IMG/VR virus record: IMGVR_UViG_3300032116_000001
Location: 310,001-374,000 of that record
Length of the DNA stretch: 64,000 bases
Reading direction: 5' to 3' (one strand)
Notes under the pieces: generated by a model
Told to the model about the DNA's origin: nothing
Seen by the model: the letters and a program-made list of their open reading frames with translations, nothing else
Databases searched by the model: none
Shown here: positions 1 to 26,432 of the stretch, one piece after another
Layout: each line of letters begins with the position of its first letter
How positions within the stretch are numbered: the first letter of the stretch is position 1
Made by a program: the position numbers and the translations under genes

Positions 1-86
1 CTAACAATAGTCAATACTTATCGGTTGAATTTTTTAATGCCAATACATGTGAAATCCCGACCATAAAATCCTGTAATTCATTAGGT

Positions 87-428
87 ATGCATGTAATTCT
101 GGAGCTTATTGGATGCAACCCCAATAATATGAGCGGGGTTGAGAAAATTCAACAAGCTTTTCATGATGCAGCAAAGCTGGCCAAGTGCAACATCGTCACA
201 GAAGCGTTTCATGAGTTTGAGCCCCATGGCGTTTCAGGAGTTGTTGTAATAAGCGAGAGCCATTTGACCTATCATGGGTGGGATGAACATGGTTATGCCG
301 CGATTGATTTTTTCTATTGCAGCGATGAAGTGCAAATATCTTTGGCCATTGAACACATAATGAAGTTTCTAGAGGCCGAAAGTTATCAAATCACTGCAAT
401 CCCCCGTGGATTTAAAAACAGTGTATAA
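87..428 (+). CDS. speD: S-adenosylmethionine decarboxylase proenzyme
   Basis: FEPHGVSGVVVISESHLTYH (ES autocleavage site), GYAAIDFFYC. Confidence 0.9.
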   Translation: MHVILELIGCNPNNMSGVEKIQQAFHDAAKLAKCNIVTEAFHEFEPHGVSGVVVISESHLTYHGWDEHGYAAIDFFYCSDEVQISLAIEHIMKFLEAESYQITAIPRGFKNSV

Positions 429-439
429 TATATAATGCT

Positions 440-646
440 ATGTTAAGATTGTTTAAATCATTATTTAAGCGCGAAAAAATCTATCACAAATCTGAGCCCC
501 TAGTTGAAATCAACCCATCTGATGTTCAAGAGCCATGTGTAAGAATCACCGTAGGGAGAAAATCAATACTCTTATCAGGTGGACAGGCCAGAAGACTGTG
601 GGGCAAACTTGGATCGAACTTGGAAAAAATTACTCCTGATAAATGA
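440..646 (+). CDS. hypothetical protein
   Basis: 68-aa ORF in tandem, overlapping the next start. Confidence 0.55.
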   Translation: MLRLFKSLFKREKIYHKSEPLVEINPSDVQEPCVRITVGRKSILLSGGQARRLWGKLGSNLEKITPDK

Positions 647-1092
647 GCTATCAAGATCGATTGCTTAACATAGAACTTGTTCCAGAATCATCATGGTGCA
701 ATAATGTTCGATCTCATGTCAAGAAATCTTCATGGGACCGAATTAGAAAACAAGTTTACAAAGATTATCAGCATAAATGTGGCATATGCAACTCAAAAGG
801 CGCTCTTGCCGCCCATGAAATATGGAATTATGATGATTCGTCTTCAAAGCAGACACTAATTGGTATGATTGCGCTTTGTGGCTTGTGTCATCATGTTAAG
901 CACATTGGATTCGCTGAAGTTTTAGCCAATCAGGGAAAACTAAACTTTCAGCGTGTTGTTAATCATTACTGCAAAATCAACAAATGCACAAATGACGAAT
1001 TTTGGGCCGACAGAGAAGAGGCATTTTATGAATGGTCGAAAAGGTCTAGAAACACATGGTCGGTTGATATATCGTATATAGAGCGATATTAA
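643..1092 (+). CDS. HNH endonuclease family protein
   Basis: CGIC...AHEIW...LCGLCHHVKH zinc/HNH pattern. Confidence 0.75.
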   Translation: MSYQDRLLNIELVPESSWCNNVRSHVKKSSWDRIRKQVYKDYQHKCGICNSKGALAAHEIWNYDDSSSKQTLIGMIALCGLCHHVKHIGFAEVLANQGKLNFQRVVNHYCKINKCTNDEFWADREEAFYEWSKRSRNTWSVDISYIERY

Positions 1093-1146
1093 TTTGCGAA
1101 GAATTCTTGCGCTAATTTCAGATGAATTAATATCGTATTAAAGATA

Positions 1147-1527
1147 ATGCTATTTGATTCTAATCCACAACATGCTGAAAGATACAATGTTGTTTCGATA
1201 ATTTTGAATAACCAGCTTTGGTCTTTTGCCGAAGTTCCAGGTGTTAAAATCATGTCGCCTACTTTTCCGATTAAACACTTTGGCACCGCAACAAATAAAT
1301 CTTGTCCGTCTCCTGTGATTAGATATGCTGTAGATTCAGATTTAAACATCTGGATCGGCAACGATGAAAATGGCATCATGTTTTGCGATGATCAACATCA
1401 TGTTTTGAGCATCCTATTCTTGTACAATCCTTTGGCCTGGGCCTCTGTTTGCGAACAAATTGGAAACAATGCTGTACAAGAAATTATTAATTCATGCGAT
1501 TGGAGCATGACTGACGGTATAGAATGA
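1147..1527 (+). CDS. hypothetical protein
   Basis: 126-aa ORF co-oriented with neighbours. Confidence 0.55.
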   Translation: MLFDSNPQHAERYNVVSIILNNQLWSFAEVPGVKIMSPTFPIKHFGTATNKSCPSPVIRYAVDSDLNIWIGNDENGIMFCDDQHHVLSILFLYNPLAWASVCEQIGNNAVQEIINSCDWSMTDGIE

Positions 1528-1693
1528 ACCAAAACTCTGAACAACAAGAAATTTTTAATCGCCTTAATCGGTATCAAGAATGTTGCCCAAAAGATCATGA
1601 TGTTCAATCAGTGCTATTATTGTGCATACTTGAAGAAATGTCGTCTATTCGAAAATTCTTAGAAAAAATAACCAAAGAAAACAAGGACTAAAT

Positions 1694-2449
1694 ATGAATG
1701 TTATCACCAATGCAGACATTATGTCTGCTTACAAATATATAAAAAAAGACGGACAGGCTGATGGACTAACAAACTTCCCCGATGTTGTGCATGCATTAAA
1801 GGCCGACGAAGAATGCCAATATGTTTGGGGTTCTGATTCTATCATGAAAGTCCCAAAAGGGAGCTGGATTTTGGCCGAGAATGATAATGATTTTCCCAGG
1901 CTGCTAGACGATGAATTCTTTCATAAGTTATATGCCTTTGACAGGCAACAAATGGATTTGATTTTTGATGATATTATAAAAGATGCATTTGGAGACCAAG
2001 ACGCTCCCGATCCTGATGATTATTGCGCCGAAGAAGTGATAAAGTGCCAATGTGGACAACATATGATTTCTGTTTGGGGCGGAGGAAACAATGACGGGAA
2101 GATCGAAATGGCTTTTTGGAACTTCGGTCACGAAGGAAGCAAAACTAGCTGGACACAAAGATTACGCCAAATTTGGCAAATTATCACTCGCGGTCACCCC
2201 CACGCTGATATGGTTGTTTTAAATTCTGCCGAACAACTCAGGCTTATTCGTTTTATGGACGTGGCGCGATCTCTCACTGCTCAGTACAAAGATGCCAGGA
2301 GAGATTATGAAAGAAAAAATATTCCGAAAGAAAAAACTCATTATACCTTGGAAGAAGTTGTAGACATGGAGGCCAATCATGTAGCTGAACAACACGAGCT
2401 TTTGGCCACAATTGAGACGCTGACCAAAAAGCTCCGATCAAACAACTAA
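1694..2449 (+). CDS. hypothetical protein
   Basis: 251-aa ORF, RBS-like AAGGA upstream. Confidence 0.7.
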   Translation: MNVITNADIMSAYKYIKKDGQADGLTNFPDVVHALKADEECQYVWGSDSIMKVPKGSWILAENDNDFPRLLDDEFFHKLYAFDRQQMDLIFDDIIKDAFGDQDAPDPDDYCAEEVIKCQCGQHMISVWGGGNNDGKIEMAFWNFGHEGSKTSWTQRLRQIWQIITRGHPHADMVVLNSAEQLRLIRFMDVARSLTAQYKDARRDYERKNIPKEKTHYTLEEVVDMEANHVAEQHELLATIETLTKKLRSNN

Positions 2450-2523
2450 AAATATATAATATTAGATTAAAAAACTTAACAAATAAAAAAATGTTGAGTT
2501 TTTTGTTTATTTTTATAGAATGA

Positions 2524-2550
2524 TGCAACAAAATATTGCTCCTGATCGTA
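2524..2550 (+). promoter_or_regulatory. ECF-sigma-like promoter TGCAAC-N17-CGTA
   Basis: motif recurs with the same spacing upstream of several other units. Confidence 0.55.
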
Positions 2551-2679
2551 TAAGAGATGTAGGAATTATTTTCTGAAAATCAAAAAAATTGAAAATTCAG
2601 CAGGTTATATTCTTACAAAAATAGAAACAAGATCAAGTTCACCCTTTTTAGTGAATGTAATTTAACAAAGAGATAAGTT

Positions 2680-2811
2680 ATGAAGGCTATGCAAGTAAAC
2701 AATATGGAGATTATCGCCGCGGGCGCATTTAATGCTACCGCTGTGGTTTTCGCCATCCCAGCAAGCCCCTGGTATTTTGAACCAGGACGAAAGACCGAAA
2801 CTCTAACGTAA
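2680..2811 (+). CDS. putative 43-aa leader peptide of the tRNA array
   Basis: MKAMQVNNMEIIAAGAFNATAVVFAIPASPWYFEPGRKTETLT*, ending just before a terminator; not in the ORF track. Confidence 0.5.
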   Translation: MKAMQVNNMEIIAAGAFNATAVVFAIPASPWYFEPGRKTETLT

Positions 2812-2834
2812 AAAGCATTAGCTTAAAAGCGAAA

Positions 2835-2872
2835 AGGCTCGGTCTGAAATCAAAACAGATCGAGCCTTTTTT
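2835..2872 (+). terminator. intrinsic terminator / attenuator hairpin
   Basis: 12-bp stem AGGCTCGGTCTG/CAGATCGAGCCT followed by a T run. Confidence 0.8.
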
Positions 2873-2946
2873 GTTGCTTCGGGCAGGAGTTAACTCCGTA
2901 AAGACTACAACCTGCGGCATCTTTAAAGGGTGAACTAAAATCAAAT

Positions 2947-3033
2947 AGGGGTATAGTTTAATGGCAAAACACTGGTCTCCAAAACCAGGGACAGTTAATG
3001 CAAGTGGGGGTTCAAGTCCCCCTGCCTCTGCCA
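2947..3033 (+). tRNA. tRNA-Trp(CCA) with enlarged variable region
   Basis: anticodon arm CTGGT-ctCCAaa-ACCAG, T arm GGGGG-TTCAAGT-CCCCC, encoded CCA. Confidence 0.85.
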
Positions 3034-3113
3034 AATTATCGAAGAGATTCGTATGTATATTGAAAATTAAATAGGTTTAAATGTAATATGAGGGCAAAAG
3101 CCCTCAGTGATTT

Positions 3114-3484
3114 ACGTTGTGCGCAAATGGTATGTATTCAGTTCGATTCTGAAGTTCCCTTGGTGGGTGAGTGGTTCGAGTCCACAACAACATGATTTTC
3201 TGAGCCAACAGGAATGTGTTGAAAGGCAGCAAATAGCGGCGGCGCATGGGGTTCGATTCCCTAACGCACAACGTATTGGCAATTTGAAGGGGCTAAACGC
3301 CACGGAAGCACAACTTCTTTGCTGAGCAGCCGTTGTTAAATAGCCCCCGATGATATTTTCCGATAAAATCTGATCGGTAATCAGTTCGAAGAGAACTCTA
3401 ATCGGATGCGGAGGGGAAATGTGGGTTCGAGTCCCACGCAGGCACTTGTGTCTGGTCGTTTAATGGTAGGACGCCCCGTGGGGT
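3114..3484 (+). ncRNA. candidate structured RNA with four T-loop hairpins
   Basis: 10-bp closing helix 3114-3123/3265-3274; TTCGA(T/G)T-capped hairpins at 3137, 3171, 3247, 3421. Confidence 0.55.
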
Positions 3485-3570
3485 AGAGAAGGATCACGCA
3501 CGTGATCAGAAGTAAAACGCGGCGTCGCAATTCCACGCCGATCTTCGAAACAGTATGAGGAAAGTAAAGT

Positions 3571-3645
3571 GCCGTCGTAGCTCAGTGGTAGAGCACGCCC
3601 CTGATAAGGGCGGGGTCATAGGTTCGAATCCTATCGGTGGCACCA
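3571..3645 (+). tRNA. tRNA-Ile(GAT)
   Basis: canonical cloverleaf, CGCCC-ctGATaa-GGGCG, CCA end. Confidence 0.95.
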
Positions 3646-3694
3646 TGTTTGCAAAATCTTTTGTGAATTATGATCGTATTAAAGTTGGAACATT

Positions 3695-4105
3695 ATGAAT
3701 TTAAGAACCAAATACCAAAGTAATTTTATTGTAATGCCTGAACATTGCAATTTTAGGATGCCACAAATTTTTGGCGGAGCTTTTATGGCAAAGCTTGATC
3801 TTTGTGCAGCCGCGGCTTGTAGCGAACTTCTTCAGTTTTCAGAATCGTCCTGTGACAACGCAGTAACATATAAGGTATTGGAAATAACTTTTCACAAAGC
3901 TGCTCAGATGGGAGATCAAATTTTCTTCGAAGCTGAAATTATTGAATTAAGAAACAATTCAATCACAGTTCAAGTAGAGGCGTATCGACAACCAAGAGAT
4001 CAAAAATTCCCTGAACGCATTCACACGGCATCGGCAAAATTTGTGTTTGTGACATTGCAGGGGGACAAGTATACTCCGCATGGATTAAAGCTTACTTCAT
4101 CATAA
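3695..4105 (+). CDS. hotdog-fold acyl-CoA thioesterase (YciA-like)
   Basis: VMPEHCN...IFGGAFMAKLD, ITFHKAAQMGD, AKFVFV. Confidence 0.8.
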   Translation: MNLRTKYQSNFIVMPEHCNFRMPQIFGGAFMAKLDLCAAAACSELLQFSESSCDNAVTYKVLEITFHKAAQMGDQIFFEAEIIELRNNSITVQVEAYRQPRDQKFPERIHTASAKFVFVTLQGDKYTPHGLKLTSS

Positions 4106-4159
4106 AAACGTATTTGGTAGAGCATACCCCCGAAAGAGGGCGAGGTTTGTGTAACAAAT

Positions 4160-4236
4160 GGGGCATTGGTGTAATTTGGTGAGCACAAAGGTCTGAAAAA
4201 CCTTGGGTGAGGGTTCAATTCCCTCTAGCCCCACCA
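4160..4236 (+). tRNA. tRNA-Phe(GAA)
   Basis: AAGGT-ctGAAaa-ACCTT, T arm, CCA; two mismatches at the base of the acceptor stem. Confidence 0.85.
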
Positions 4237-4244
4237 AAATTTTC

Positions 4245-4321
4245 GGCCCCATCGTCTACGATGGCTGTGACACCACCATCTCACGGTGGAAAACGGAGAT
4301 CGACACTCCGTGGGGTCACCA
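4245..4321 (+). tRNA. tRNA-Glu(CTC)
   Basis: CCACC-atCTCac-GGTGG, T-loop ATCGACA, CCA. Confidence 0.85.
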
Positions 4322-4374
4322 AATTTTCATTTGTTAGTCTGGTGCTAATCTACTGATATGGAGAACATAATTAG

Positions 4375-4752
4375 ATGAACAGATGGGAATACGCAAACTT
4401 CGAAGTGCTGAAAGGCAAGACTTTGAGAGAGGTCTTTTACTCCAAGAAAGAGGAAAAAATCTCCTTTATAGTAGACGATCAGGAAGCATATCACATGTCA
4501 CACTTTCAGGATTGCTGCGAGGCAGTTTGGGTGGAAGACATATGTGGCGACTTGAACGATTTGGTCGGAACGCCGATTCTTTTCGCAGAAAAGTCTTCTT
4601 CGGAAGACACATCTGTAGAATGGACGTTCTATAGAATCGGTACAATCAAGGGGACGGTGGTGATTCGCTGGTGTGGCGAACTCGACACTTGCTACTCTAT
4701 CGAAGTGAGCTTCTATCGTACTTTTGGCGAAGACACACCGCCCAAGACTTAG
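4375..4752 (+). CDS. conserved phage hypothetical protein
   Basis: HFQDCCEAVWVEDICGDLNDLVGTPIL motif, recognised from phage proteins. Confidence 0.75.
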   Translation: MNRWEYANFEVLKGKTLREVFYSKKEEKISFIVDDQEAYHMSHFQDCCEAVWVEDICGDLNDLVGTPILFAEKSSSEDTSVEWTFYRIGTIKGTVVIRWCGELDTCYSIEVSFYRTFGEDTPPKT

Positions 4753-4857
4753 CAGTGATTAAACACCTACTGCGATGACTGATGGATAGACATCTGACCC
4801 GAGCGGAAAGGCGCTCAAGTCGGGGGAGGCGAGAAGGTGAAGCCTCCCTTATCGAGC

Positions 4858-4934
4858 GGCCCGCTCGTCTACGTTGGCTAGGACTCCGCGTTTTCAGCGC
4901 GGCAAACAGAGATCGACACTCTGGCGGGTCACCA
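4858..4934 (+). tRNA. tRNA-Glu(TTC)
   Basis: CCGCG-ttTTCag-CGCGG, T-loop ATCGACA, CCA. Confidence 0.9.
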
Positions 4935-5006
4935 TTTTTAATCAGATTTCATAAAATCGCTAATTTTTTGTGATTCTGATCGTATTATAGATAACAGAAC
5001 ATTTTC

Positions 5007-5082
5007 GGGGCCATAGCTCAGTTGGGAGAGCACCTGCTTTGCAAGCAGGGGGTCGAGAGTTCGAGTCTCTCTGGCTCCACCA
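5007..5082 (+). tRNA. tRNA-Ala(TGC)
   Basis: canonical cloverleaf with G3:U70, CCA. Confidence 0.95.
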
Positions 5083-5190
5083 CGAACGGTTCTAAGGTAG
5101 GACATTAAATATTGATGCGGGGCGAACGGACAATAAAAAGTCAATGTGCCAACCAAACCATGGAAGTCTGATGGCATCAATGAAAAAAAT

Positions 5191-5267
5191 CGGGGATTAG
5201 CTCAGTTTGGTGGAGCGGGCGCTTTGGGAGCGTCAGGTCGCAGGTTCGAGTCCTGTATCCCCGACCA
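5191..5267 (+). tRNA. tRNA-Pro(TGG)
   Basis: GGCGC-ttTGGga-GCGTC, CCA. Confidence 0.95.
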
Positions 5268-5316
5268 TTTTTCAAAAAATCTTTGTTCATATTATATTTA
5301 TTGTACAAAAAACAAT

Positions 5317-6078
5317 ATGAACAAAAAGACATCTATAATATGGACTGAATCCAAAGAAAATTTTCAACTTCGAGTTAATAATTGCACGAGCATTGCGGGC
5401 ATAATACGCAGCTTTGGCCTTTCTATAAGTGGTGCTCAACATAGCCGAATCAAACAGCGCATTGCTCAGGATTGTATAGATATTTCTCATATTCCTTTGG
5501 GTATCGGAGCAAGTAAAGGCTGCAAGAGATTAAATAAGCGAATTCCTTTGGAAGAATATTTATCAAATAATCGGCCCATTCAATCACACGATTTAAAAAA
5601 ACGATTGTTAAGAGAAAATATTTTTGTTTATGAGTGTAGTGAATGCAAATTAGGATCATTATGGAATGGCAAGCCGATTTCATTACAGCTTGATCATATT
5701 AATGGCAATAATTGTGATAACAGATTGGTTAATCTTCGAATTTTGTGTCCAAATTGTCACTCTCAAACTCCAACATTTAGCGGAAAACACAAAGCGAAGA
5801 AGTGTTTGGATTGTGGTGGTAAAATTAGCAGGCCTACATCTACAAGATGTAAAAAATGCCATATACACAACAATCGATCACAGCCACCAAAGCCTTCTAA
5901 GTACATAAAATTTGGATTAGAAAAAGAAGAACTTGAGATGATAATATGGAAAAAGCCAACTTGTCAAATTGCAAAAGAATTTGGTGTTTCAGACAAAGCT
6001 GTTGAAAAAAGATGTAAAAAGCTAGGAGTTTCTAAGCCTCCAAGAGGTTATTGGAGAAAGCTGGAAACCGCAAAATAA
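5317..6078 (+). CDS. free-standing HNH homing endonuclease
   Basis: CSEC...LQLDHINGNNCDNRLVNLRILCPNCHSQT; start moved to the ATG downstream of tRNA-Pro. Confidence 0.85.
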   Translation: MNKKTSIIWTESKENFQLRVNNCTSIAGIIRSFGLSISGAQHSRIKQRIAQDCIDISHIPLGIGASKGCKRLNKRIPLEEYLSNNRPIQSHDLKKRLLRENIFVYECSECKLGSLWNGKPISLQLDHINGNNCDNRLVNLRILCPNCHSQTPTFSGKHKAKKCLDCGGKISRPTSTRCKKCHIHNNRSQPPKPSKYIKFGLEKEELEMIIWKKPTCQIAKEFGVSDKAVEKRCKKLGVSKPPRGYWRKLETAK

Positions 6079-6084
6079 AAATGT

Positions 6085-6159
6085 GGGCGTGTGACGCAAT
6101 GGTAGCGTGGGTGCATTACAGGCATCAAGTTGCAGGTTCGAATCCTGTCATGCCCACCA
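6085..6159 (+). tRNA. tRNA-Val(TAC)
   Basis: GGTGC-atTACag-GCATC, CCA. Confidence 0.9.
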
Positions 6160-6251
6160 CCGATTAGTATAATTTTAAATAACCGAAAAGGTTTAGAACA
6201 GTAGCATCCAGGTAATTTCAGTTCAGGGCTCTGCTGCTGTTCTAAAAACGC

Positions 6252-6326
6252 GGGCGGTTAGCTCAGTGGTAGAGCACTACATTGACATTGTAGGGGTCAC
6301 AGGTTCGAAACCTGTACCGCCCACCA
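6252..6326 (+). tRNA. tRNA-Val(GAC)
   Basis: canonical cloverleaf, ttGACat loop, CCA. Confidence 0.95.
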
Positions 6327-6343
6327 AAATATTTTGTTTAAAT

Positions 6344-6421
6344 CTGGGCGTAGTTCAGTTTGGTTAGAATGCTACTCTGGGAGAGTAGAGGTCATTGGTT
6401 CAAATCCAATCGCTCAGACCA
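6344..6421 (+). tRNA. tRNA-Pro(GGG)
   Basis: CTACT-ctGGGag-AGTAG, CCA. Confidence 0.95.
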
Positions 6422-6486
6422 TTTTTACACATTGAAACAAAATTCAAACGGTATGCGTATAATAAATATACAAACAATTTGATTGC

Positions 6487-6565
6487 TTGACGGAAGTTTT
6501 GCGGATGAAACGCTGGGCCGATGCATACCCCCAGAGATCGCAGGTTCGAATCCTGCCTGTCTTGC
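6487..6565 (+). ncRNA. tRNA-like RNA with 12-nt anticodon loop
   Basis: D stem GTTT/AAAC, CTGGG-CCGATGCATACC-CCCAG, T arm GCAGG-TTCGAAT-CCTGC, partial acceptor stem, no CCA. Confidence 0.5.
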
Positions 6566-6569
6566 AATC

Positions 6570-6626
6570 GGGACCGAAGGTCAGACTTCTGCATCAGTCA
6601 TTGGTTCAACTCCGATAGGTCCCACA
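6570..6626 (+). ncRNA. D-armless mini tRNA-like RNA
   Basis: GGGACC/GGTCCC acceptor, GACT-TCTGCATC-AGTC arm, ATTGG-TTCAACT-CCGAT T arm. Confidence 0.5.
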
Positions 6627-6710
6627 AGTTTCTCGTACATTGCGGTCTGAGATGACCGCCCCGATCATAAAATAAAACAATCAATGGAAAGCGACTATCA
6701 CTATACCATT

Positions 6711-6802
6711 GGGTGATGACTCCCCTGCATGTCTGTAAAACATGTGCCGCATCAGAACGTGGGGAAATATGGCGAGAGGTGAAATTCCTCCATCACCCAC
6801 CA
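6711..6802 (+). ncRNA. non-canonical tRNA-Tyr(GTA)-like RNA (8/4 stem, no D arm)
   Basis: GGGTGATG/CATCACCC, CATGT-ctGTAaa-ACATG, GAGG-TGAAATT-CCTC, ACCA end. Confidence 0.65.
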
Positions 6803-6847
6803 CGACATTCAATGCGAAGGCATTAACGACCATAACAGATAAAGCAA

Positions 6848-6932
6848 GGGAGTATCGCATAGAGGCAATTGCGGGAGACTGTAAATCTCCTCTGGAAACA
6901 GTTCGTAGGTTCGAGTCCTGCTGCTCCCACCA
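6848..6932 (+). tRNA. tRNA-Tyr(GTA)
   Basis: GGAGA-ctGTAaa-TCTCC, long variable arm, CCA. Confidence 0.95.
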
Positions 6933-7217
6933 AAATTATAAACTATTATGAAAAATACAAATATTACGATTCGCATGCTTTAGTAAACTTCCTTAACGGA
7001 AGCTTCAGGAGCTTGCGAATTGAAACACAACCGATCATATCGTCGTCACCAATCCGAAAAGATTAAGAAAAAAATTCGTCGTCGCATTCAAGTGTCGATG
7101 AACATGCTTGATATCTTTGAGGATATGGGTTGTAAACTGTTCTGAAAAATCTACTAATTTCTAAAAAATTCTCAAATCATGCAGGAATACTTAGGGTATG
7201 TCCTTTAATAAACTAAT

Positions 7218-8396
7218 GTGATTGCAGTAGAAAGACATCATATTAAAGCAACGAAAGATTTACTCAGGCTGACAAGCCTGAGTAAAGAACTCTATAATAG
7301 ATGCAATTTCTTAATGAGACAAGCATGGTTTAAGAAAGAAAGACTGCCAGATATTAGCATTCTTATTAAAGAAACTCAACATTTGAATTGTTTCAAGAAT
7401 CTACATAATACAAAAACTGCAAAACAAACAATCCGTCAAGTATTGACGGATTGGAGTAACTATAGAAAGGCACTTACTGCCTACGGCAGAGATAAATCTA
7501 AATTCTTAGGATGTCCTAAGCCTCCTCACTATAAAAAGAAACTATCTCAAGTGATTTTCTATAATGAAACAATTAAAGGAGGACAGAGCGGAAAGCCAAA
7601 GGCTTTCCTTACTCCAACAAATAATTGCTTCAGTATTAAATCAGATAAACAGTACAAACAAGTAGTAGTTACTCCAAAAACTTTTGGTTTTATGATAGAA
7701 GTTCAATATGAACTTCCTAATATCCCAAAGCCGAAAACTAAGAAAAACAATTTTTGTTGCATTGACATAGGATTGAATAATCTAGCAACGATAACTTCAG
7801 ATAAGCATAGTCCAATACTTATCAACGGTCGTATAGTTAAATCATTCAATCAACAATACAACAAGAACGTCAGTAAGAAATCATCTCGAAAGAGATATTT
7901 TAGACTGGAAAATTACTTCCATCATGTCAGTAAAATCATTGTGGAAAATTGTGTTAAACACAATCTAGGAACTATTGTCATTGGCAAAAATGATGGATGG
8001 AAAACAGGGATGAAACTTGGAAAGAAAACAAATCAGAATTTCTGTTCTGTTCCCTTCTGTAATTTATTTCAGAAGATTCAGTACAAGGCTAACGCATTGG
8101 GAATTGATGTTATCTTTACTGAAGAATCCTACACAAGTCAAGCATCATTTCTGGATAGGGATGAAATCCCTGTCTGGAAGAAAGGAAGGCAGAATGAATA
8201 TGAGTTCTCTGGAACTCGTATTAAAAGAGGCTTGTATCGCAGTGCCGAAGGCACTCTGCTTAATGCAGATGCAAATGGCAGTGCAAACATTGGACGAAAA
8301 GTATTCCCAAACGACGCCTTCGGCGTTGAATGGGATAGGAGCGTTGCCGAAACGCCAGTTGTCGTTAATCCATTAAGACAAGTGTGCGCAGCCTAA
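7218..8396 (+). CDS. tnpB: IS200/IS605-family TnpB RNA-guided nuclease (no Zn finger)
   Basis: CIDIGLNNLA, IVIGKNDGWK, TEESYTSQAS, LNADANGSANI. Confidence 0.9.
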   Translation: MIAVERHHIKATKDLLRLTSLSKELYNRCNFLMRQAWFKKERLPDISILIKETQHLNCFKNLHNTKTAKQTIRQVLTDWSNYRKALTAYGRDKSKFLGCPKPPHYKKKLSQVIFYNETIKGGQSGKPKAFLTPTNNCFSIKSDKQYKQVVVTPKTFGFMIEVQYELPNIPKPKTKKNNFCCIDIGLNNLATITSDKHSPILINGRIVKSFNQQYNKNVSKKSSRKRYFRLENYFHHVSKIIVENCVKHNLGTIVIGKNDGWKTGMKLGKKTNQNFCSVPFCNLFQKIQYKANALGIDVIFTEESYTSQASFLDRDEIPVWKKGRQNEYEFSGTRIKRGLYRSAEGTLLNADANGSANIGRKVFPNDAFGVEWDRSVAETPVVVNPLRQVCAA

Positions 8397-8480
8397 CGGC
8401 TGCGAGCAACACACTTAGCTGATTAAGACATAAACTTGTAGATTTTTGTAGATTTACAGGAACGGTTATACGTGGGTCAA
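8340..8480 (+). mobile_element. putative omegaRNA / right end of the TnpB element
   Basis: hairpin GCAGCC-TAAC-GGCTGC flanked by GTGTG/CACAC overlapping the tnpB stop; no tnpA adjacent. Confidence 0.5.
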
Positions 8481-8776
8481 CAAGGCCTACAGAGACAAAG
8501 TTGTTAGAAATCATTATAAAAATGAAGGCAAAACAACGATATTAGGCTCTAAATGTCTTTGCGATTATTGCGAGTCAAACAGAACTATTCGCCAACAACA
8601 GGCTTTAGAAAAAGCACTTGATGAATGTGGTGAATATTTTAAAAATGGTGTTTATAATGAGGATCACAATCATGATGCTTACGGGCACCGAAAACACAAT
8701 CGTGGCCGTAAGCATGAAAATCGCTTTTACGGCATGGTGGATGAAAGATTCCACTAAGGACGAGGTATAGAAAACT

Positions 8777-8989
8777 ATGAAAACATATCTAGTAACATTA
8801 AAACCTGCGCCCAATGATCACAAGATTGGTCGTGCGCAGCTCTCGGCTACTCTTGACAAAATGGGAATATCCCATAACATAAAAGAATTTTGGTACTTTG
8901 GAAGACACAGGGCTGTCATTGAGATGCATCCCTCTTCTGCCAAAAAAGTTGAAAGTAGCGGCTTGGCCGAAAGTGTATGCTTTGCTTAA
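8777..8989 (+). CDS. hypothetical protein
   Basis: 70-aa ORF, GAGG RBS-like element upstream. Confidence 0.55.
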   Translation: MKTYLVTLKPAPNDHKIGRAQLSATLDKMGISHNIKEFWYFGRHRAVIEMHPSSAKKVESSGLAESVCFA

Positions 8990-8990
8990 T

Positions 8991-9017
8991 TGCAACTTTT
9001 TGCTTTCGGTTAACGTA
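8991..9017 (+). promoter_or_regulatory. ECF-sigma-like promoter TGCAAC-N17-CGTA
   Basis: exact motif and spacing. Confidence 0.55.
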
Positions 9018-9391: not shown

Positions 9392-9460
9392 GCCGTTCGT
9401 AGCTCAGAGGCAGAGCGCCAGTGCACAGGGAGACGTGGTTCGAATCCGCCGACGGCACCA
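9392..9460 (+). ncRNA. tRNA-like RNA with collapsed anticodon arm
   Basis: intact D arm (GCTC/GAGC), T-loop TTCGAAT, GCCGT/ACGGC+ACCA; weak anticodon arm around TGC. Confidence 0.55.
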
Positions 9461-9498
9461 GTTTTAAACATTTAAACCTATTTATTCGAAAAGCCATT

Positions 9499-10158
9499 AT
9501 GAAAAAGTTCAAACAATTTGATGTTTTGGTGTCTGACACTATTGAGAAGGTTCTTGCTCAAATTGGATCACAAACAATCTTGGTGACTTCAGTAAAGGGC
9601 GATGTTGTTTCAGTTAAGGGCAATTCTTTAAGACTTCGAACATTTAAAGAAACGGGAGTGATGTGCCCACTCTGCGAAGCGCAGGCAACACATTGGGTAT
9701 TGACTTACACAAGTGAGGATAAGGCTCATTTAAATTTAATGGGGCCTGACGGGTTGTTATTCACACACGATCACGTAACTCCGCTAAACCAAGGCGGACA
9801 AGACAATCTTGCAAACTCACACACTATGTGCTTTGATTGTAATTACTTTCTTGGGGATAAGTCGCATTTTTATGGCGAGGCGTCCCAGAACATTAAATTA
9901 TTGCTTGAAACAACAAGAGTGGTCTATAATAGTGAAAATCAGGCCTGGCGCGTGAGTGTCAACAAGATGGGGCACACGGCGAGGCGACCCAAGAGGCTAT
10001 ATTCGGATTTTTATAGTTTTGGCGAGGCTTTTAAGTTTGCTAAAGACCTTGTTGATAACCCAAGAATAGATGAATTTATTGGACCTGTAATGTTGCGGCC
10101 AGAGCATACCCTTCGTGTTACTGCGCTTGAAGATTGGCTTAAAAATAATTCAATTTAA
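9499..10158 (+). CDS. HNH endonuclease family protein
   Basis: CPLC...FTHDHVTPLNQGGQDNLANSHTMCFDCN; start at MKKFKQ. Confidence 0.75.
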   Translation: MKKFKQFDVLVSDTIEKVLAQIGSQTILVTSVKGDVVSVKGNSLRLRTFKETGVMCPLCEAQATHWVLTYTSEDKAHLNLMGPDGLLFTHDHVTPLNQGGQDNLANSHTMCFDCNYFLGDKSHFYGEASQNIKLLLETTRVVYNSENQAWRVSVNKMGHTARRPKRLYSDFYSFGEAFKFAKDLVDNPRIDEFIGPVMLRPEHTLRVTALEDWLKNNSI

Positions 10159-25310: not shown

Positions 25311-26432
25311 TCAACTACCACACGCACAAGGCGTGTGGCTTGCTACAAGCTCAGCCTTCGGCTGAGCGAACAATAGGGAGGTTGACTGCTCCCCTAAAGA
25401 ACCTATATTCTTACTGGCATTAAAGTCTGCATTCTCCGTGTGTCCGCAGGACATGCAGAGAAACACAGTTTGACTTTTTCTATTGGCTTTTTCACAATAT
25501 CCGCACTCACTACACGTCGCAGACGTGTAGTGAGCAGGAACAATAGCTAAAGGAACTCCATAGAGTTCAGCTTTGTAAGTAATGTAGCTTCTGAGTTGGG
25601 CGAATGCCCAACTCATTCTTTGACTTCTATTCACTCGCCTGACCGTTACTCTTTTGTTGATATGCGTTAGCTCTTCGAGAGCCAACGCATATCCGAGTGC
25701 CTTTGCTTTTGTTACTAAAAGTTTTGAAATGACGTGATTTGTGTCTTTTCTAAATCTGGATTCTTTTTGTCCACATTTCTTGATTCTTCTTTTTGCAGAG
25801 CGTGTTCCACGCTTCTGCAATCTTTGTCGATGAGAGTGATATTGTTTTCTTTTCTTCTCGATGTGTTCTCCCGAGAACACATCTCCTAAAGAACTTACAG
25901 CGATTTGTTTCACTCCTAAGTCTATTCCTATAACGTCTTTGGCGTTATAGGCTGATTCTGTTGGAATTTCTAAAGTACAAAGAAGATAGAACTTGCCATT
26001 TTGATAAACTAAATCAACTTGCCCCTTTCTATATTTGAAGCGTTCTTTGTCGTATATTTGGATTGGGATATTGATTCTTCCATCATTAGTCCAGATATTA
26101 ACTAAATCAGTTCCTTTAAAAGTGATTACTCTGTCGTCGTAGACGACAGCAGAAGTCTTTTTGAAGTAATTTGGATTTTTGCTTCTTTTCTTTTTATATG
26201 TAGCGGTAACCACATCAATAGCCCTTATTATTAATTGAGAAGAGAAGCTTGGATGCGTTTCACGCATCCCATGATATGCATTTCTTTGCAATTGAACTTT
26301 ATTATAAGTTTCTGTTGAATGAGCTATTGTTGAAAGCTCATTACAAACATCATTGAAAGTATTCATAGTGCGCAGAAGCGCACTATGATGAATCTCATTT
26401 GTATTGAGTTTCACTTTCAGAGTGATATTCAC
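25311..26432 (-). CDS. tnpB: IS200/IS605-family TnpB with Zn finger
   Basis: GIDLGVKQIA, LALEEL, YTSATCSECG...CMSCGHTENADFNASKNI; 3' hairpin CTCAGCC-GAA-GGCTGAG and GTAGTTGAC end. Confidence 0.92.
   Translation of the reverse strand: MNITLKVKLNTNEIHHSALLRTMNTFNDVCNELSTIAHSTETYNKVQLQRNAYHGMRETHPSFSSQLIIRAIDVVTATYKKKRSKNPNYFKKTSAVVYDDRVITFKGTDLVNIWTNDGRINIPIQIYDKERFKYRKGQVDLVYQNGKFYLLCTLEIPTESAYNAKDVIGIDLGVKQIAVSSLGDVFSGEHIEKKRKQYHSHRQRLQKRGTRSAKRRIKKCGQKESRFRKDTNHVISKLLVTKAKALGYALALEELTHINKRVTVRRVNRSQRMSWAFAQLRSYITYKAELYGVPLAIVPAHYTSATCSECGYCEKANRKSQTVFLCMSCGHTENADFNASKNIGSLGEQSTSLLFAQPKAELVASHTPCACGS

Follow-up and report, generated by a model that had tools for sequence, protein, structure and literature searches.

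A candidate leader-peptide attenuator upstream of the tRNA gene cluster of a giant freshwater phage

A short open reading frame (ORF) followed by an intrinsic terminator and a competing antiterminator, both predicted, lies in front of the tRNA gene array of a giant freshwater phage, and in this phage and three related lineages the codons of the leader match the tRNAs that follow, which suggests that the phage makes its own tRNAs only when the cell runs short of them. The element was examined in a window of 64,000 nucleotides (positions 310,001 to 374,000 of IMG/VR record IMGVR_UViG_3300032116_000001), and all features described below are on the plus strand of that window. The initial annotation, made from the sequence alone, had proposed a leader-peptide attenuator that gates the array, and every sequence feature on which it relied was found to be present at the position given for it. 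Its interpretation was upheld only in part: the comparative evidence supports the attenuator itself, several structural details required correction, and the further proposal that the element senses anti-tRNA defence has not been tested, as the design would respond to any shortage of the cognate charged tRNAs, including plain amino-acid starvation.

Sequence features and RNA evidence in the window

The leader ORF begins with an ATG at 2680 and ends with a TAA at 2809-2811 (43 codons including the start), and within it the codons TGG, TAT, TTT, GAA and CCA (W-Y-F-E-P) occupy 2770-2784. The terminator (2829-2874 with its A/U extension) has a stem in which GGCTCGGTCTG (2836-2846) pairs with CAGATCGAGCC (2856-2866) through 10 Watson-Crick pairs and one G.U pair, with a 9-nt loop, a flanking A-run and a U-tract, TTTTTT, at 2867-2872, and its folding energy is -24.0 kcal/mol. 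An automated terminator scan missed it only because that scan allows loops of 3-8 nt. The segment AGACCGA (2792-2798), inside the ORF, is complementary to TCGGTCT (2839-2845) in the 5' arm of the terminator. The first gene of the array is tRNA-Trp(CCA) at 2947-3033, identified by both ARAGORN and Rfam (59.8 bits), and genes for Phe, two Glu, two Pro and Tyr tRNAs follow up to 6932.

The promoter-like motif at 2524-2554 reads TGCAAC-19 nt-TATAAG and is not a canonical sigma-70 match; however, the same TGCAAC-19-TAnnnn arrangement is present in a related locus, L032 (at 3261-3291). RNA contigs from four metatranscriptomes begin 13-29 nt downstream of the motif, at 2567 (run X17, where the contig is joined directly to Illumina adapter letters), 2581, 2582 and 2583, with zero depth over the upstream gene (1600-2567), and 2567-2583 is probably the transcription start region, about 100 nt upstream of the ORF. 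A sigma-70-like site at 2494-2521 does not fit these RNA 5' ends. The contigs cross the terminator and reach 2928, 2929, 2965 and 3304. They show that an RNA runs through the terminator towards tRNA-Trp but cannot give a termination ratio, and there is no direct evidence that the ORF is translated or that the hairpin terminates transcription. The leader RNA from about 2567 to about 2929 was assembled as a contig in all four metatranscriptomes, at word depths of 4.4 to 25.4.

Two further features were identified that the initial annotation did not include. The first is a 12-bp long-range helix, P1, formed by perfect complementarity between 2636-2647 and 2925-2936 (p about 4e-4 against shuffles), with a pairing probability of about 1 in the fold of 2567-2946; relative to L032 it has four compensatory double changes, five unchanged pairs and one one-sided change. 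P1 was absent or not significant in a second related locus, L036, and the duplex-folding statistic for long sequences was uninformative. RNA contigs of two runs end at 2928 and 2929, within the 3' strand of P1. The second is a hairpin at 2768-2786 (CCUGGU/ACCAGG, 7-nt loop, pairing probability above 0.95) that holds the W-Y-F-E-P codons, such that TGG and CCA are also its two arms. The sequence TGGTATTTTGAACCAGG is identical in L032, and L036 keeps CCUUGG/CCAGGG with different loop codons (H-P-Y). In addition, between the terminator and the array is a conserved structured spacer of unknown function (2879-2918), in which a 21-nt block (2896-2916) is 100% identical in L032 although its flanks diverge, and a small hairpin changes from GGAG/CUCC to GGGA/UCCC in L032.

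These features raise the possibility that the leader is a non-coding structured 5' RNA which serves in processing, stability or insulation of the tRNA precursor and is closed by P1, with an incidental ORF and an alternative pairing that is either not used or responds to something other than a ribosome. Consistent with this alternative, the leader folds strongly (z=-5.4), the leader RNA was assembled as a contig in all four metatranscriptomes, P1 carries compensatory changes, an invariant block and a conserved junction lie downstream of the terminator, and conservation at the hairpin is greater at the nucleotide than at the protein level. Most genes of this phage lack a Shine-Dalgarno sequence, so no ribosome-binding-site argument is possible. 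Conversely, the same frame stays open in four lineages through indels, the start codon context ATGAA is kept in three lineages, the stop always falls just after the antiterminator strand, P1 is absent or not significant in L036, and the amino-acid content of the leader follows the tRNA content of its own array, which a non-coding RNA does not explain. A covariance-model search (cmscan) of positions 1-9000 against Rfam at E<=1 returned only tRNAs and chance hits, with nothing credible in 2560-2946, and so gave no match to the Trp, His, Leu or Thr leader families or to the T-box; a T-box was rejected on this basis. We consider the non-coding reading unlikely, although it is the strongest of the alternatives.

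Conservation and co-variation in related lineages

In order to obtain relatives for comparison, we used the DUF7448 gene that lies inside the array, which led to three further lineages: L032/L033, L036 and L039 (88%, 58% and 54% identity, respectively). All have a promoter, a short ORF, an intrinsic terminator and tRNAs on one strand, and L036 and L039 carry TTGACA-17-TACAAT and TTGACA-17-CATAAT, respectively, at the place equivalent to the promoter-like motif. tRNA-Trp(CCA) is also the first ARAGORN- or Rfam-supported tRNA after the terminator in L032 and L036. Of 80 IMG/VR loci with DUF7448, only L039 has the module; two others, L050 and L055, have a small ORF and a terminator followed by a strong promoter, which is a different design, and L118 is not in an array. 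Other searches were less productive. A blastn search of GenBank phages in distant mode gave only tRNA-sized matches, and none for the L036 leader, while exact and degenerate patterns and neighbouring proteins searched against IMG/VR and the JGI metagenome collection returned only the source contig. The upstream 251-aa protein has only remote homologues, and a search of a protein atlas gave nothing useful. A structure-aware pattern scanned over GTDB genomes gave 17 hits, all of which are chance, as none has a called tRNA on the same strand downstream of the motif or resembles the leader. Twenty-four contigs that carry the 43-aa peptide were at least 99.4% identical and thus too close for co-variation tests.

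Conservation of the ORF in relatives had been specified in advance as a test of the attenuator, and an ORF was found at the same place in L032/L033, L036 and L039 (43, 44 and 25 codons, respectively). It is open in all four lineages despite about 40% nucleotide divergence and indels, and in the window, L032 and L036, where the frames were checked, it is the only open frame. Third-position changes are in excess and dN is 0.41 with dS saturated against L032, although the population variants (at least 99.4% identical) show four nonsynonymous changes to one synonymous change in the ORF and so no purifying selection on the peptide.

The same prior criteria had asked for compensatory changes in the pairing, and these too were found. 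The terminator stem of the window (..CGGUCUG/CAGAUCG..) is conserved in L032, where the loop differs, but in L036 the inner stem is replaced with compensation (..CAGCU/AGCUG..), and the upstream strand changes with it: AGACCGA in the window, GUUCGGACCG in L032, GCUGAGUC in L036 and UUCUGACC in L039. The 7-bp complement taken alone is only borderline in the window (p=0.056 against dinucleotide shuffles) but becomes convincing across lineages (p=0.006 for L032, 0.003 for L036 and 0.008 for L039). A chance arrangement of an accidental ORF and an accidental complement next to an ordinary terminator might be entertained from the window alone, as a 43-codon ORF in 300 nt is not rare and would not by itself be significant. 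However, Fisher's method applied by hand to the p-values of the window, L036 and L039 gives about 1e-4. There are only four lineages, of which the window and L032 are close, which counts against the attenuator. As the arrangement recurs in four lineages with changed sequences, and the composition tests described below point the same way, chance is very unlikely and already disfavoured.

The initial annotation had also called for the leader to be folded with and without a ribosome footprint. In nascent RNA ending at 2848 the antiterminator formed in both cases, with pairing probabilities of 0.87-0.99, and it is a 54-nt imperfect hairpin (2792-2845, -17.2 kcal/mol) rather than the bare 7-bp helix originally envisaged. 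The predicted default state is therefore read-through, and a ribosome that reaches the stop codon is what permits termination. Equivalent hairpins form in the nascent RNA of L032, L036 and L039, and the stability of the antiterminator across the four lineages is comparable to that of the terminator (-17.2/-24.1/-29.8/-15.3 against -24.0/-24.9/-23.0/-25.1 kcal/mol), although in L039 the antiterminator overlaps only 4 nt of the terminator stem plus the loop. The distance from UGG to the antiterminator strand is 22, 19 and 20 nt, and the stop codon lies inside the antiterminator hairpin in all lineages. The conserved hairpin at 2768-2786 sits directly upstream, where an anti-antiterminator or pause hairpin would be expected, but it does not compete with the antiterminator strand; these observations leave undecided whether it has such a role, and no clear anti-antiterminator is present. 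The GACCG core of the upstream strand is read in different frames in the window and in L032, and the peptide tails of L032-type variants differ as if by frameshift, so the constraint is on the RNA and not the protein.

Leader codons and tRNA content

The amino acids of each leader track its own array: W/Y/F/E/P/A/V/I in the window, W/Y/H/P in L036 and I/V/A in L039. In the window the matching codons extend well beyond the W-Y-F-E-P first noted, to 14 of the 15 residues at positions 21-35. To test this correspondence, the best 14-codon stretch of each leader was scored for residues served by its own array, giving values at the amino-acid level of 0.93 for the window, 0.86 for L032, 0.71 for L036 and 0.86 for L039 (empirical p<=0.002 among about 6,200 segments of phage ORFs), whereas the L036 leader against the other arrays, and the reverse, was not enriched (p=0.10-1.0). 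It is important to note that A/V/I-rich leaders also resemble hydrophobic peptides, which inflates three of the four tests, that the array of L032 is cut by the end of its contig, and that several tRNA identities in L036 and L039 rest on weak calls. The regulatory codons do not form tandem runs: the window has single W, Y and F codons, plus E and P once each in the sensing stretch, and the 5 Pro, 3 His, 2 Trp and 2 Tyr codons of L036 are dispersed. L036 also has His and Trp codons downstream of the antiterminator strand, where a stall would favour termination.

Two other interpretations of the peptide were considered. The first is that the ORF encodes a real small protein, for example a single-pass membrane peptide, with its own ordinary and somewhat leaky terminator, and that the tRNAs are expressed by unregulated read-through. 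In support of this, the window and L032 peptides have a hydrophobic core of about 20 residues followed by a polar tail, L039 has a 14-residue I/M/V/A core, gene callers call the ORF in many assemblies, and RNA crosses the terminator. However, the L036 peptide is polar, rich in Pro, His and Trp and without a hydrophobic core, C-terminal tails change by frameshift among close variants, only 44% of residues are shared between the window and L032, and searches found no relatives beyond the clade and no family hit. This reading also does not explain the co-variation of the antiterminator strand with the terminator arm, and we regard it as improbable. The second, similarly doubtful, is a nascent-peptide arrest sensor in which a conserved P-W-x-x-x-P-G peptide stalls the ribosome in response to a ligand or factor, as with TnaC or SecM, rather than to tRNA supply, and the stall then controls the terminator. 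P-W and P-G are conserved at the same positions in the window, L032 and L036, and W, P and G are typical of arrest motifs of SecM, TnaC and RAPP-type peptides. Against this, L039 lacks the motif altogether, and a variant, P0199, has S-R in place of P-G while apparently keeping the nucleotides CCAGG in another frame (inferred by back-translation from the peptide only). In addition, the residues between W and P-G differ (YFE against HPY) and follow the array, and CCNUGG and CCAGG pair as an RNA hairpin.

A proposed demand-driven supply of phage tRNAs

With moderate confidence, we favor the explanation that the element is a ribosome-mediated transcription attenuator that gates the phage tRNA array. 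The analysis itself establishes the sequence features, their conservation and co-variation, the predicted folds and the existence of an RNA with this 5' end that crosses the terminator, whereas translation of the ORF, termination in vivo and its dependence on stalling are inferences, as neither translation nor the response of read-through to scarcity of charged tRNA was measured here. In this model, a promoter just upstream of 2567 starts an RNA that carries the leader ORF and, as RNA polymerase moves on, AGACCGA pairs with the 5' arm of the terminator to form the antiterminator. A ribosome that translates the leader quickly and reaches the stop codon (2809) would sit on or unwind the 5' half of that hairpin, such that the terminator forms and transcription stops before tRNA-Trp. 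If the ribosome stalls earlier because a cognate charged tRNA is scarce, the antiterminator would persist and polymerase would read into the array. As the leader codons are, in this view, a sample of exactly those tRNA species that the array encodes, the new tRNAs would relieve the stall and shut the array down again, making the module a demand-driven tRNA supply loop. In the window and L032 lineages, read-through RNA would additionally close P1 around the whole leader, which probably defines or stabilises the processed leader next to the tRNA 5' end.

The closest known systems are the leader-peptide attenuators of enterobacterial amino-acid operons (trpL, hisL, pheL, thrL, leuL and ilvL), which share a promoter-proximal short ORF, an intrinsic terminator before the first structural gene, an antiterminator that uses the 5' arm of the terminator, a stop codon placed so that a finishing ribosome blocks the antiterminator, and regulatory codons cognate to what the operon supplies; the thr and ilv leaders also mix codons of several amino acids. 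The phage element differs in that it is viral and precedes tRNA genes rather than biosynthetic enzymes, its codons are mostly single and of up to eight kinds rather than in the tandem runs of classical leaders, its ORF of 43 codons is longer than most, and it has a long-range closing helix and a conserved spacer. An untranslated leader is predicted to read through, whereas the trp leader super-attenuates. The pheST (pheM) attenuator similarly controls a component of the translation apparatus according to the supply of charged tRNA, but it is cellular, controls a synthetase and uses a run of Phe codons, whereas the phage element would control the tRNAs themselves and read many codons. T-box riboswitches also sense tRNA status and decide between a terminator and an antiterminator in a 5' leader, but bind uncharged tRNA directly through a specifier codon and the T-box sequence and need no translation, while the conserved feature here is an ORF. 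Phage tRNA clusters, including the T4 and T5 arrays, have been considered in terms of codon supply or counter-defence, as with a phage tRNA that neutralises PARIS (PMC11464382) and anticodon-loop variants that evade nucleases (PMC10264068). They are likewise phage-borne arrays whose benefit depends on shortage or cleavage of host tRNAs, but those studies describe what the tRNAs do and not demand-sensing control of their transcription, and in the literature searched we found no paper that describes a leader-peptide attenuator in front of a phage tRNA array, or such control of tRNA genes.

In its broadest form, which we judge about as likely as not, our interpretation is that phage tRNA arrays can carry a built-in supply sensor, a leader peptide whose codon content evolves in step with the tRNA genes behind it, so that a shortage of any of those tRNAs, whether from codon-usage mismatch, host shut-off or tRNA-cleaving defence systems, stalls the ribosome and opens the array. 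It would be the first ribosome-mediated attenuator known to regulate tRNA genes, and one that reads many tRNA species at once, and would thereby extend classical attenuation to tRNA genes and to viruses. It would also provide a compact natural sensor of the availability of individual tRNAs that could be re-targeted, and a direct experimental handle, because read-through of one small cassette reports which tRNA shortages the phage experiences in the cell. The co-variation of leader composition with array content is also a simple rule that can be used to search other phage genomes for the same logic. Why phages carry tRNAs has been debated for about fifty years, with codon supply, host shut-off and escape from tRNA-cleaving defence as the candidate reasons, and a leader whose codons mirror the array would show that at least some phages treat their tRNAs as an on-demand resource.

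Leader features and RNA contigs upstream of the tRNA array

The window belongs to a 378,848-bp IMG/VR contig from a freshwater metagenome, a jumbo phage, with window base 1 corresponding to contig base 310,001. All of the features listed in the initial annotation were found in the sequence at the positions it had given, and its observation therefore holds. These include a 43-codon ORF (2680-2811), the codons TGG TAT TTT GAA CCA within it (2770-2784), the motif AGACCGA (2792-2798) opposite its complement TCGGTCT (2839-2845), and an 11-bp G+C-rich hairpin (2836-2846/2856-2866) preceded by an A-run and followed by a T6 run. The tRNA array follows, with tRNA-Trp(CCA) first at 2947, and also holds Phe, two Glu, two Pro and Tyr. 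No Rfam family was found for the leader. Taken alone, the window gives weak statistics, as the 7-nt complement has p=0.056 against shuffles and an ORF of this length is not unusual.

The tRNA-Trp(CCA) gene (2947-3033) is 87 nt long and has a 13-nt insertion in the variable region compared with the 74-nt tRNA-Trp of the related locus L032, a long variable arm being unusual for tRNA-Trp. In the stretch 3113-3570, ARAGORN calls a tRNA-Ser(CGA) at 3113-3195 for which Rfam gives no tRNA match at E<=1, and a T-arm-like remnant lies at 3237-3270; this stretch is transcribed (RNA contigs reach 3304 and cover 3127-3278). These may be decayed or non-canonical tRNA genes. A weak tRNA at 6487-6564 (Rfam 33.5 bits) is missed by ARAGORN at default settings, but at lower thresholds it is called as Cys(GCA), or as Ile with a 5-nt intron. 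Three HNH endonuclease ORFs (643-1092, 5146-6078 and 9421-10158) and two TnpB/IS605-type ORFs (7218-8396 and 25311-26432) lie in and around the array, which appears to be a hot spot for mobile elements. The phage also encodes an S-adenosylmethionine decarboxylase (87-428, Pfam E=8e-34), as does the contig of the relative P0018.

To determine whether the leader is transcribed, Logan contigs from four independent freshwater metatranscriptomes were mapped to 1600-7500. Depth over the upstream gene (1600-2567) was zero in all four runs, and contigs began at 2567 (in run X17, where the end was joined directly to Illumina adapter letters and is therefore a true molecule end), 2581, 2582 and 2583. 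Every one of these contigs crosses the terminator, and they end at 2928, 2929, 2965 and 3304. Because contig depth is flat along a contig, these data say nothing about the fraction of transcripts that terminate, but coverage this patchy argues against DNA carry-over, and a promoter must therefore lie just upstream of 2567. This fits the motif at 2524-2554 (TGCAAC-19 nt-TATAAG), where the initial annotation had placed a promoter motif, and which recurs with the same spacing in L032. The leader and tRNA-Trp lie on one transcript.

Related loci and conservation of the leader ORF

Close relatives of the 43-aa peptide and of the neighboring genes were at least 99.4% identical and carried too few changes to test anything, with five variable sites in the ORF, four of them nonsynonymous. 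Among 25 near-identical population contigs, 7 of the 8 variable sites between 2600 and 3120 fall within a 91-nt stretch (2731-2821) comprising the 3' half of the ORF and the top of the antiterminator, whereas the promoter, the terminator and tRNA-Trp are almost invariant. More graded relatives were obtained through the DUF7448 gene that lies inside the array (4375-4752). The loci L032 and L033 have a DUF7448 that is 88% identical to that of the window, although the gene upstream of the leader is different, a glycosyl hydrolase. In locus L036 the identity of DUF7448 is 58%, and in L039, which comes from a 177.7-kb IMG/VR contig found with a DUF7448 profile, it is 54%. All four lineages show the same order on one strand: promoter, short ORF, intrinsic terminator, 60-110 nt of spacer and tRNAs. 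L036 and L039 have canonical promoters (TTGACA-17-TACAAT and TTGACA-17-CATAAT, respectively).

A 442-aa class I aminoacyl-tRNA-synthetase-like gene (PF00133, PF09334) sits inside the tRNA array of L032 (5944-7272). In L036, two tRNA halves (2162-2413) are separated by about 190 nt that hold a 62-aa ORF (2181-2369), which could be an intron or an inserted element, and a second, non-canonical tRNA-like gene lies at 1906-2008. In L039, two tRNA-like sequences with a CAU anticodon loop (Met or Ile2) were read by eye, one between the promoter and the leader ORF (about 1583-1660) and one just after the terminator (about 1925-2011), but Rfam finds neither at E<=0.1. A different control design was seen in the phages L050 (4460-4790) and L055 (4445-4775), which have near-complete tRNA sets (23-28 genes) and carry a small ORF and a terminator followed by a strong TTGACA-17-TACAAT promoter directly before the first tRNA.

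Absence of the ORF from relatives had been named in advance as an outcome that would count against an attenuator; instead, an ORF was present in each lineage, with 43 codons in the window and in L032, 44 in L036 and 25 in L039. In the window, L032 and L036, where the frames were checked, the other two frames are not both open, and only the ORF frame is open in all three. The window and L032 differ at 41% of the nucleotides in codons 1-36 and by a 6-nt in-frame indel, and yet dN is 0.41 while dS is saturated. After the W-Y-F-E-P-G block the two sequences are read in different frames because of a 1-nt indel, and three further L032-type variants have tails that differ as if by frameshift. The tail is therefore not conserved as protein, but the nucleotides GACCG within it are conserved.

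Alternative pairings and additional RNA structure

Folding of the leader with and without a ribosome footprint had been suggested at the outset as a test of the switch. In the nascent RNA that ends before the 3' arm of the terminator, the proposed pairing forms with probability 0.87-0.99 as the base of a 54-nt imperfect hairpin (2792-2845), and it does so whether or not ribosome footprints are imposed. The same was found for L032, L036 and L039. The paired strands differ between lineages: the upstream (antiterminator) strand and its partner in the 5' arm of the terminator are AGACCGA and UCGGUCU in the window, GUUCGGACCG and CGGUCUGAAU in L032, GCUGAGUC and GGCUCAGC in L036, and UUCUGACC and GGUCAGAA in L039. 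The search for compensatory changes in this pairing, which had likewise been proposed beforehand, showed that the inner terminator stem is replaced, with compensation, between the window and L036. At stem position 6, G-C becomes A-U, at position 8, U-A becomes C-G, and at both positions the upstream strand carries the matching change, a three-strand co-variation. Complementarity exceeds that of dinucleotide shuffles with p=0.056, 0.006, 0.003 and 0.008 for the window, L032, L036 and L039, respectively.

The antiterminator and terminator have comparable stability, with values of -17.2 and -24.0 kcal/mol, respectively, in the window, -24.1 and -24.9 in L032, -29.8 and -23.0 in L036, and -15.3 and -25.1 in L039. 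The 2:3 and 3:4 hairpins of the E. coli trp leader have a similar relation. The stop codon lies inside the antiterminator hairpin in every lineage, and the invariant UGG codon lies 19-22 nt upstream of the antiterminator strand. A ribosome stalled at UGG therefore leaves the strand free, and a ribosome at the stop codon covers it, fully in L032 and partly in the window; in L036 it does not, because the stop is 28 nt downstream of the strand.

Three further elements were identified in the leader RNA, and they bear on the alternative that this is a non-coding processing leader with an incidental ORF. First, a perfect 12-bp complement joins 2636-2647, in the 5' untranslated region, to 2925-2936, which lies 11 nt before tRNA-Trp (p about 4e-4), and closes the whole leader with probability about 1 in the full-length fold. 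Against L032 this helix shows four compensatory double changes, five unchanged pairs and one one-sided change, but it is not significant in L036, whose 5' region is short. It can form only in read-through RNA, and two RNA contigs end inside its 3' strand. We speculate that it has a role in defining or stabilizing the processed leader next to the RNase P site, although this is a guess. Second, CCUGGU (2768-2773) and ACCAGG (2781-2786) form a hairpin that holds the W-Y-F-E-P codons. Its nucleotides are identical in L032, its arms are kept in L036 with other loop codons, and the peptide variant P0199 appears to keep CCAGG in another frame, as inferred by back-translation from the peptide only. 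The conservation of P-W and P-G, which is of relevance to the alternative of a nascent-peptide arrest sensor, is therefore at least partly an RNA constraint. The hairpin may act as a pause hairpin, a function that was not assayed here. Third, the 21-nt block CCGTAAAGACTACAACCTGCG (2896-2916), between the terminator and the 3' strand of the long-range helix, is invariant between the window and L032 although its flanks have diverged, and we have no explanation for its function.

Leader codons, array content and the proposed attenuator

The most telling result came from comparison of each leader with the array that follows it. In the window, residues 21-35 read AVVFAIPASPWYFEP, and 14 of these 15 residues have a tRNA in the array (Trp, Ile, Phe, two Glu, Ala, two Pro, two Val, Tyr). 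The array of L036 holds Trp, Tyr, Trp, two His, four Pro and Leu(UAA) by ARAGORN calls at lowered thresholds, with a second Tyr read only by eye, and the corresponding stretch of its leader reads HYPCPVNPWHPYPG. In L039, ARAGORN calls ten tRNAs, all Val, Ile or Ala, eight of which are confirmed as tRNAs by Rfam, and the 25-residue leader has the core IMVMAIVVAAAIIA. The best 14-codon stretch of each leader was then scored against about 6,200 same-length segments of ORFs from these phages. Each leader is enriched for its own array, with amino-acid fractions of 0.93, 0.86, 0.71 and 0.86 for the window, L032, L036 and L039 (p<=0.002), and at the codon level p<=0.004 for the window, L036 and L039. 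Conversely, the L036 leader against the other arrays, and the other leaders against the L036 array, are not enriched (p=0.10-1.0). The window, L032 and L039 share A, V and I and so cross-match, and it is the contrast with L036 that carries the specificity. A caveat is that A/V/I-rich stretches also resemble hydrophobic peptides, as might be expected if the ORF encoded a real small protein with a leaky terminator; however, the L036 leader is polar, which argues against a conserved membrane peptide.

The best reading of these data is a ribosome-mediated attenuator. It departs from the trp model in one way: no anti-antiterminator is evident, so an untranslated leader should read through, and fast translation to the stop codon is what allows termination. 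As the evidence is entirely computational and rests on four lineages, we hold this reading with moderate confidence only. None of the four alternatives (a non-coding processing leader, a small protein, an arrest sensor or chance) explains both the three-strand co-variation and the match between leader and array. The interpretation in the initial annotation is supported in part. Its further proposal, that the element is a sensor of anti-tRNA defense, is possible but not specific. Any shortage of the cognate charged tRNAs would trigger the switch, and amino-acid starvation, which extra tRNA cannot cure, would trigger it too.

Full-text searches of the literature identified recent work on phage tRNAs as counter-defense (PMC10264068, PMC11464382) but, in the library searched, no description of a leader-peptide attenuator in front of tRNA genes, either phage or cellular. 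The mechanism class is classical, and what is new is the regulated target, the multi-species codon sampler and the viral setting.
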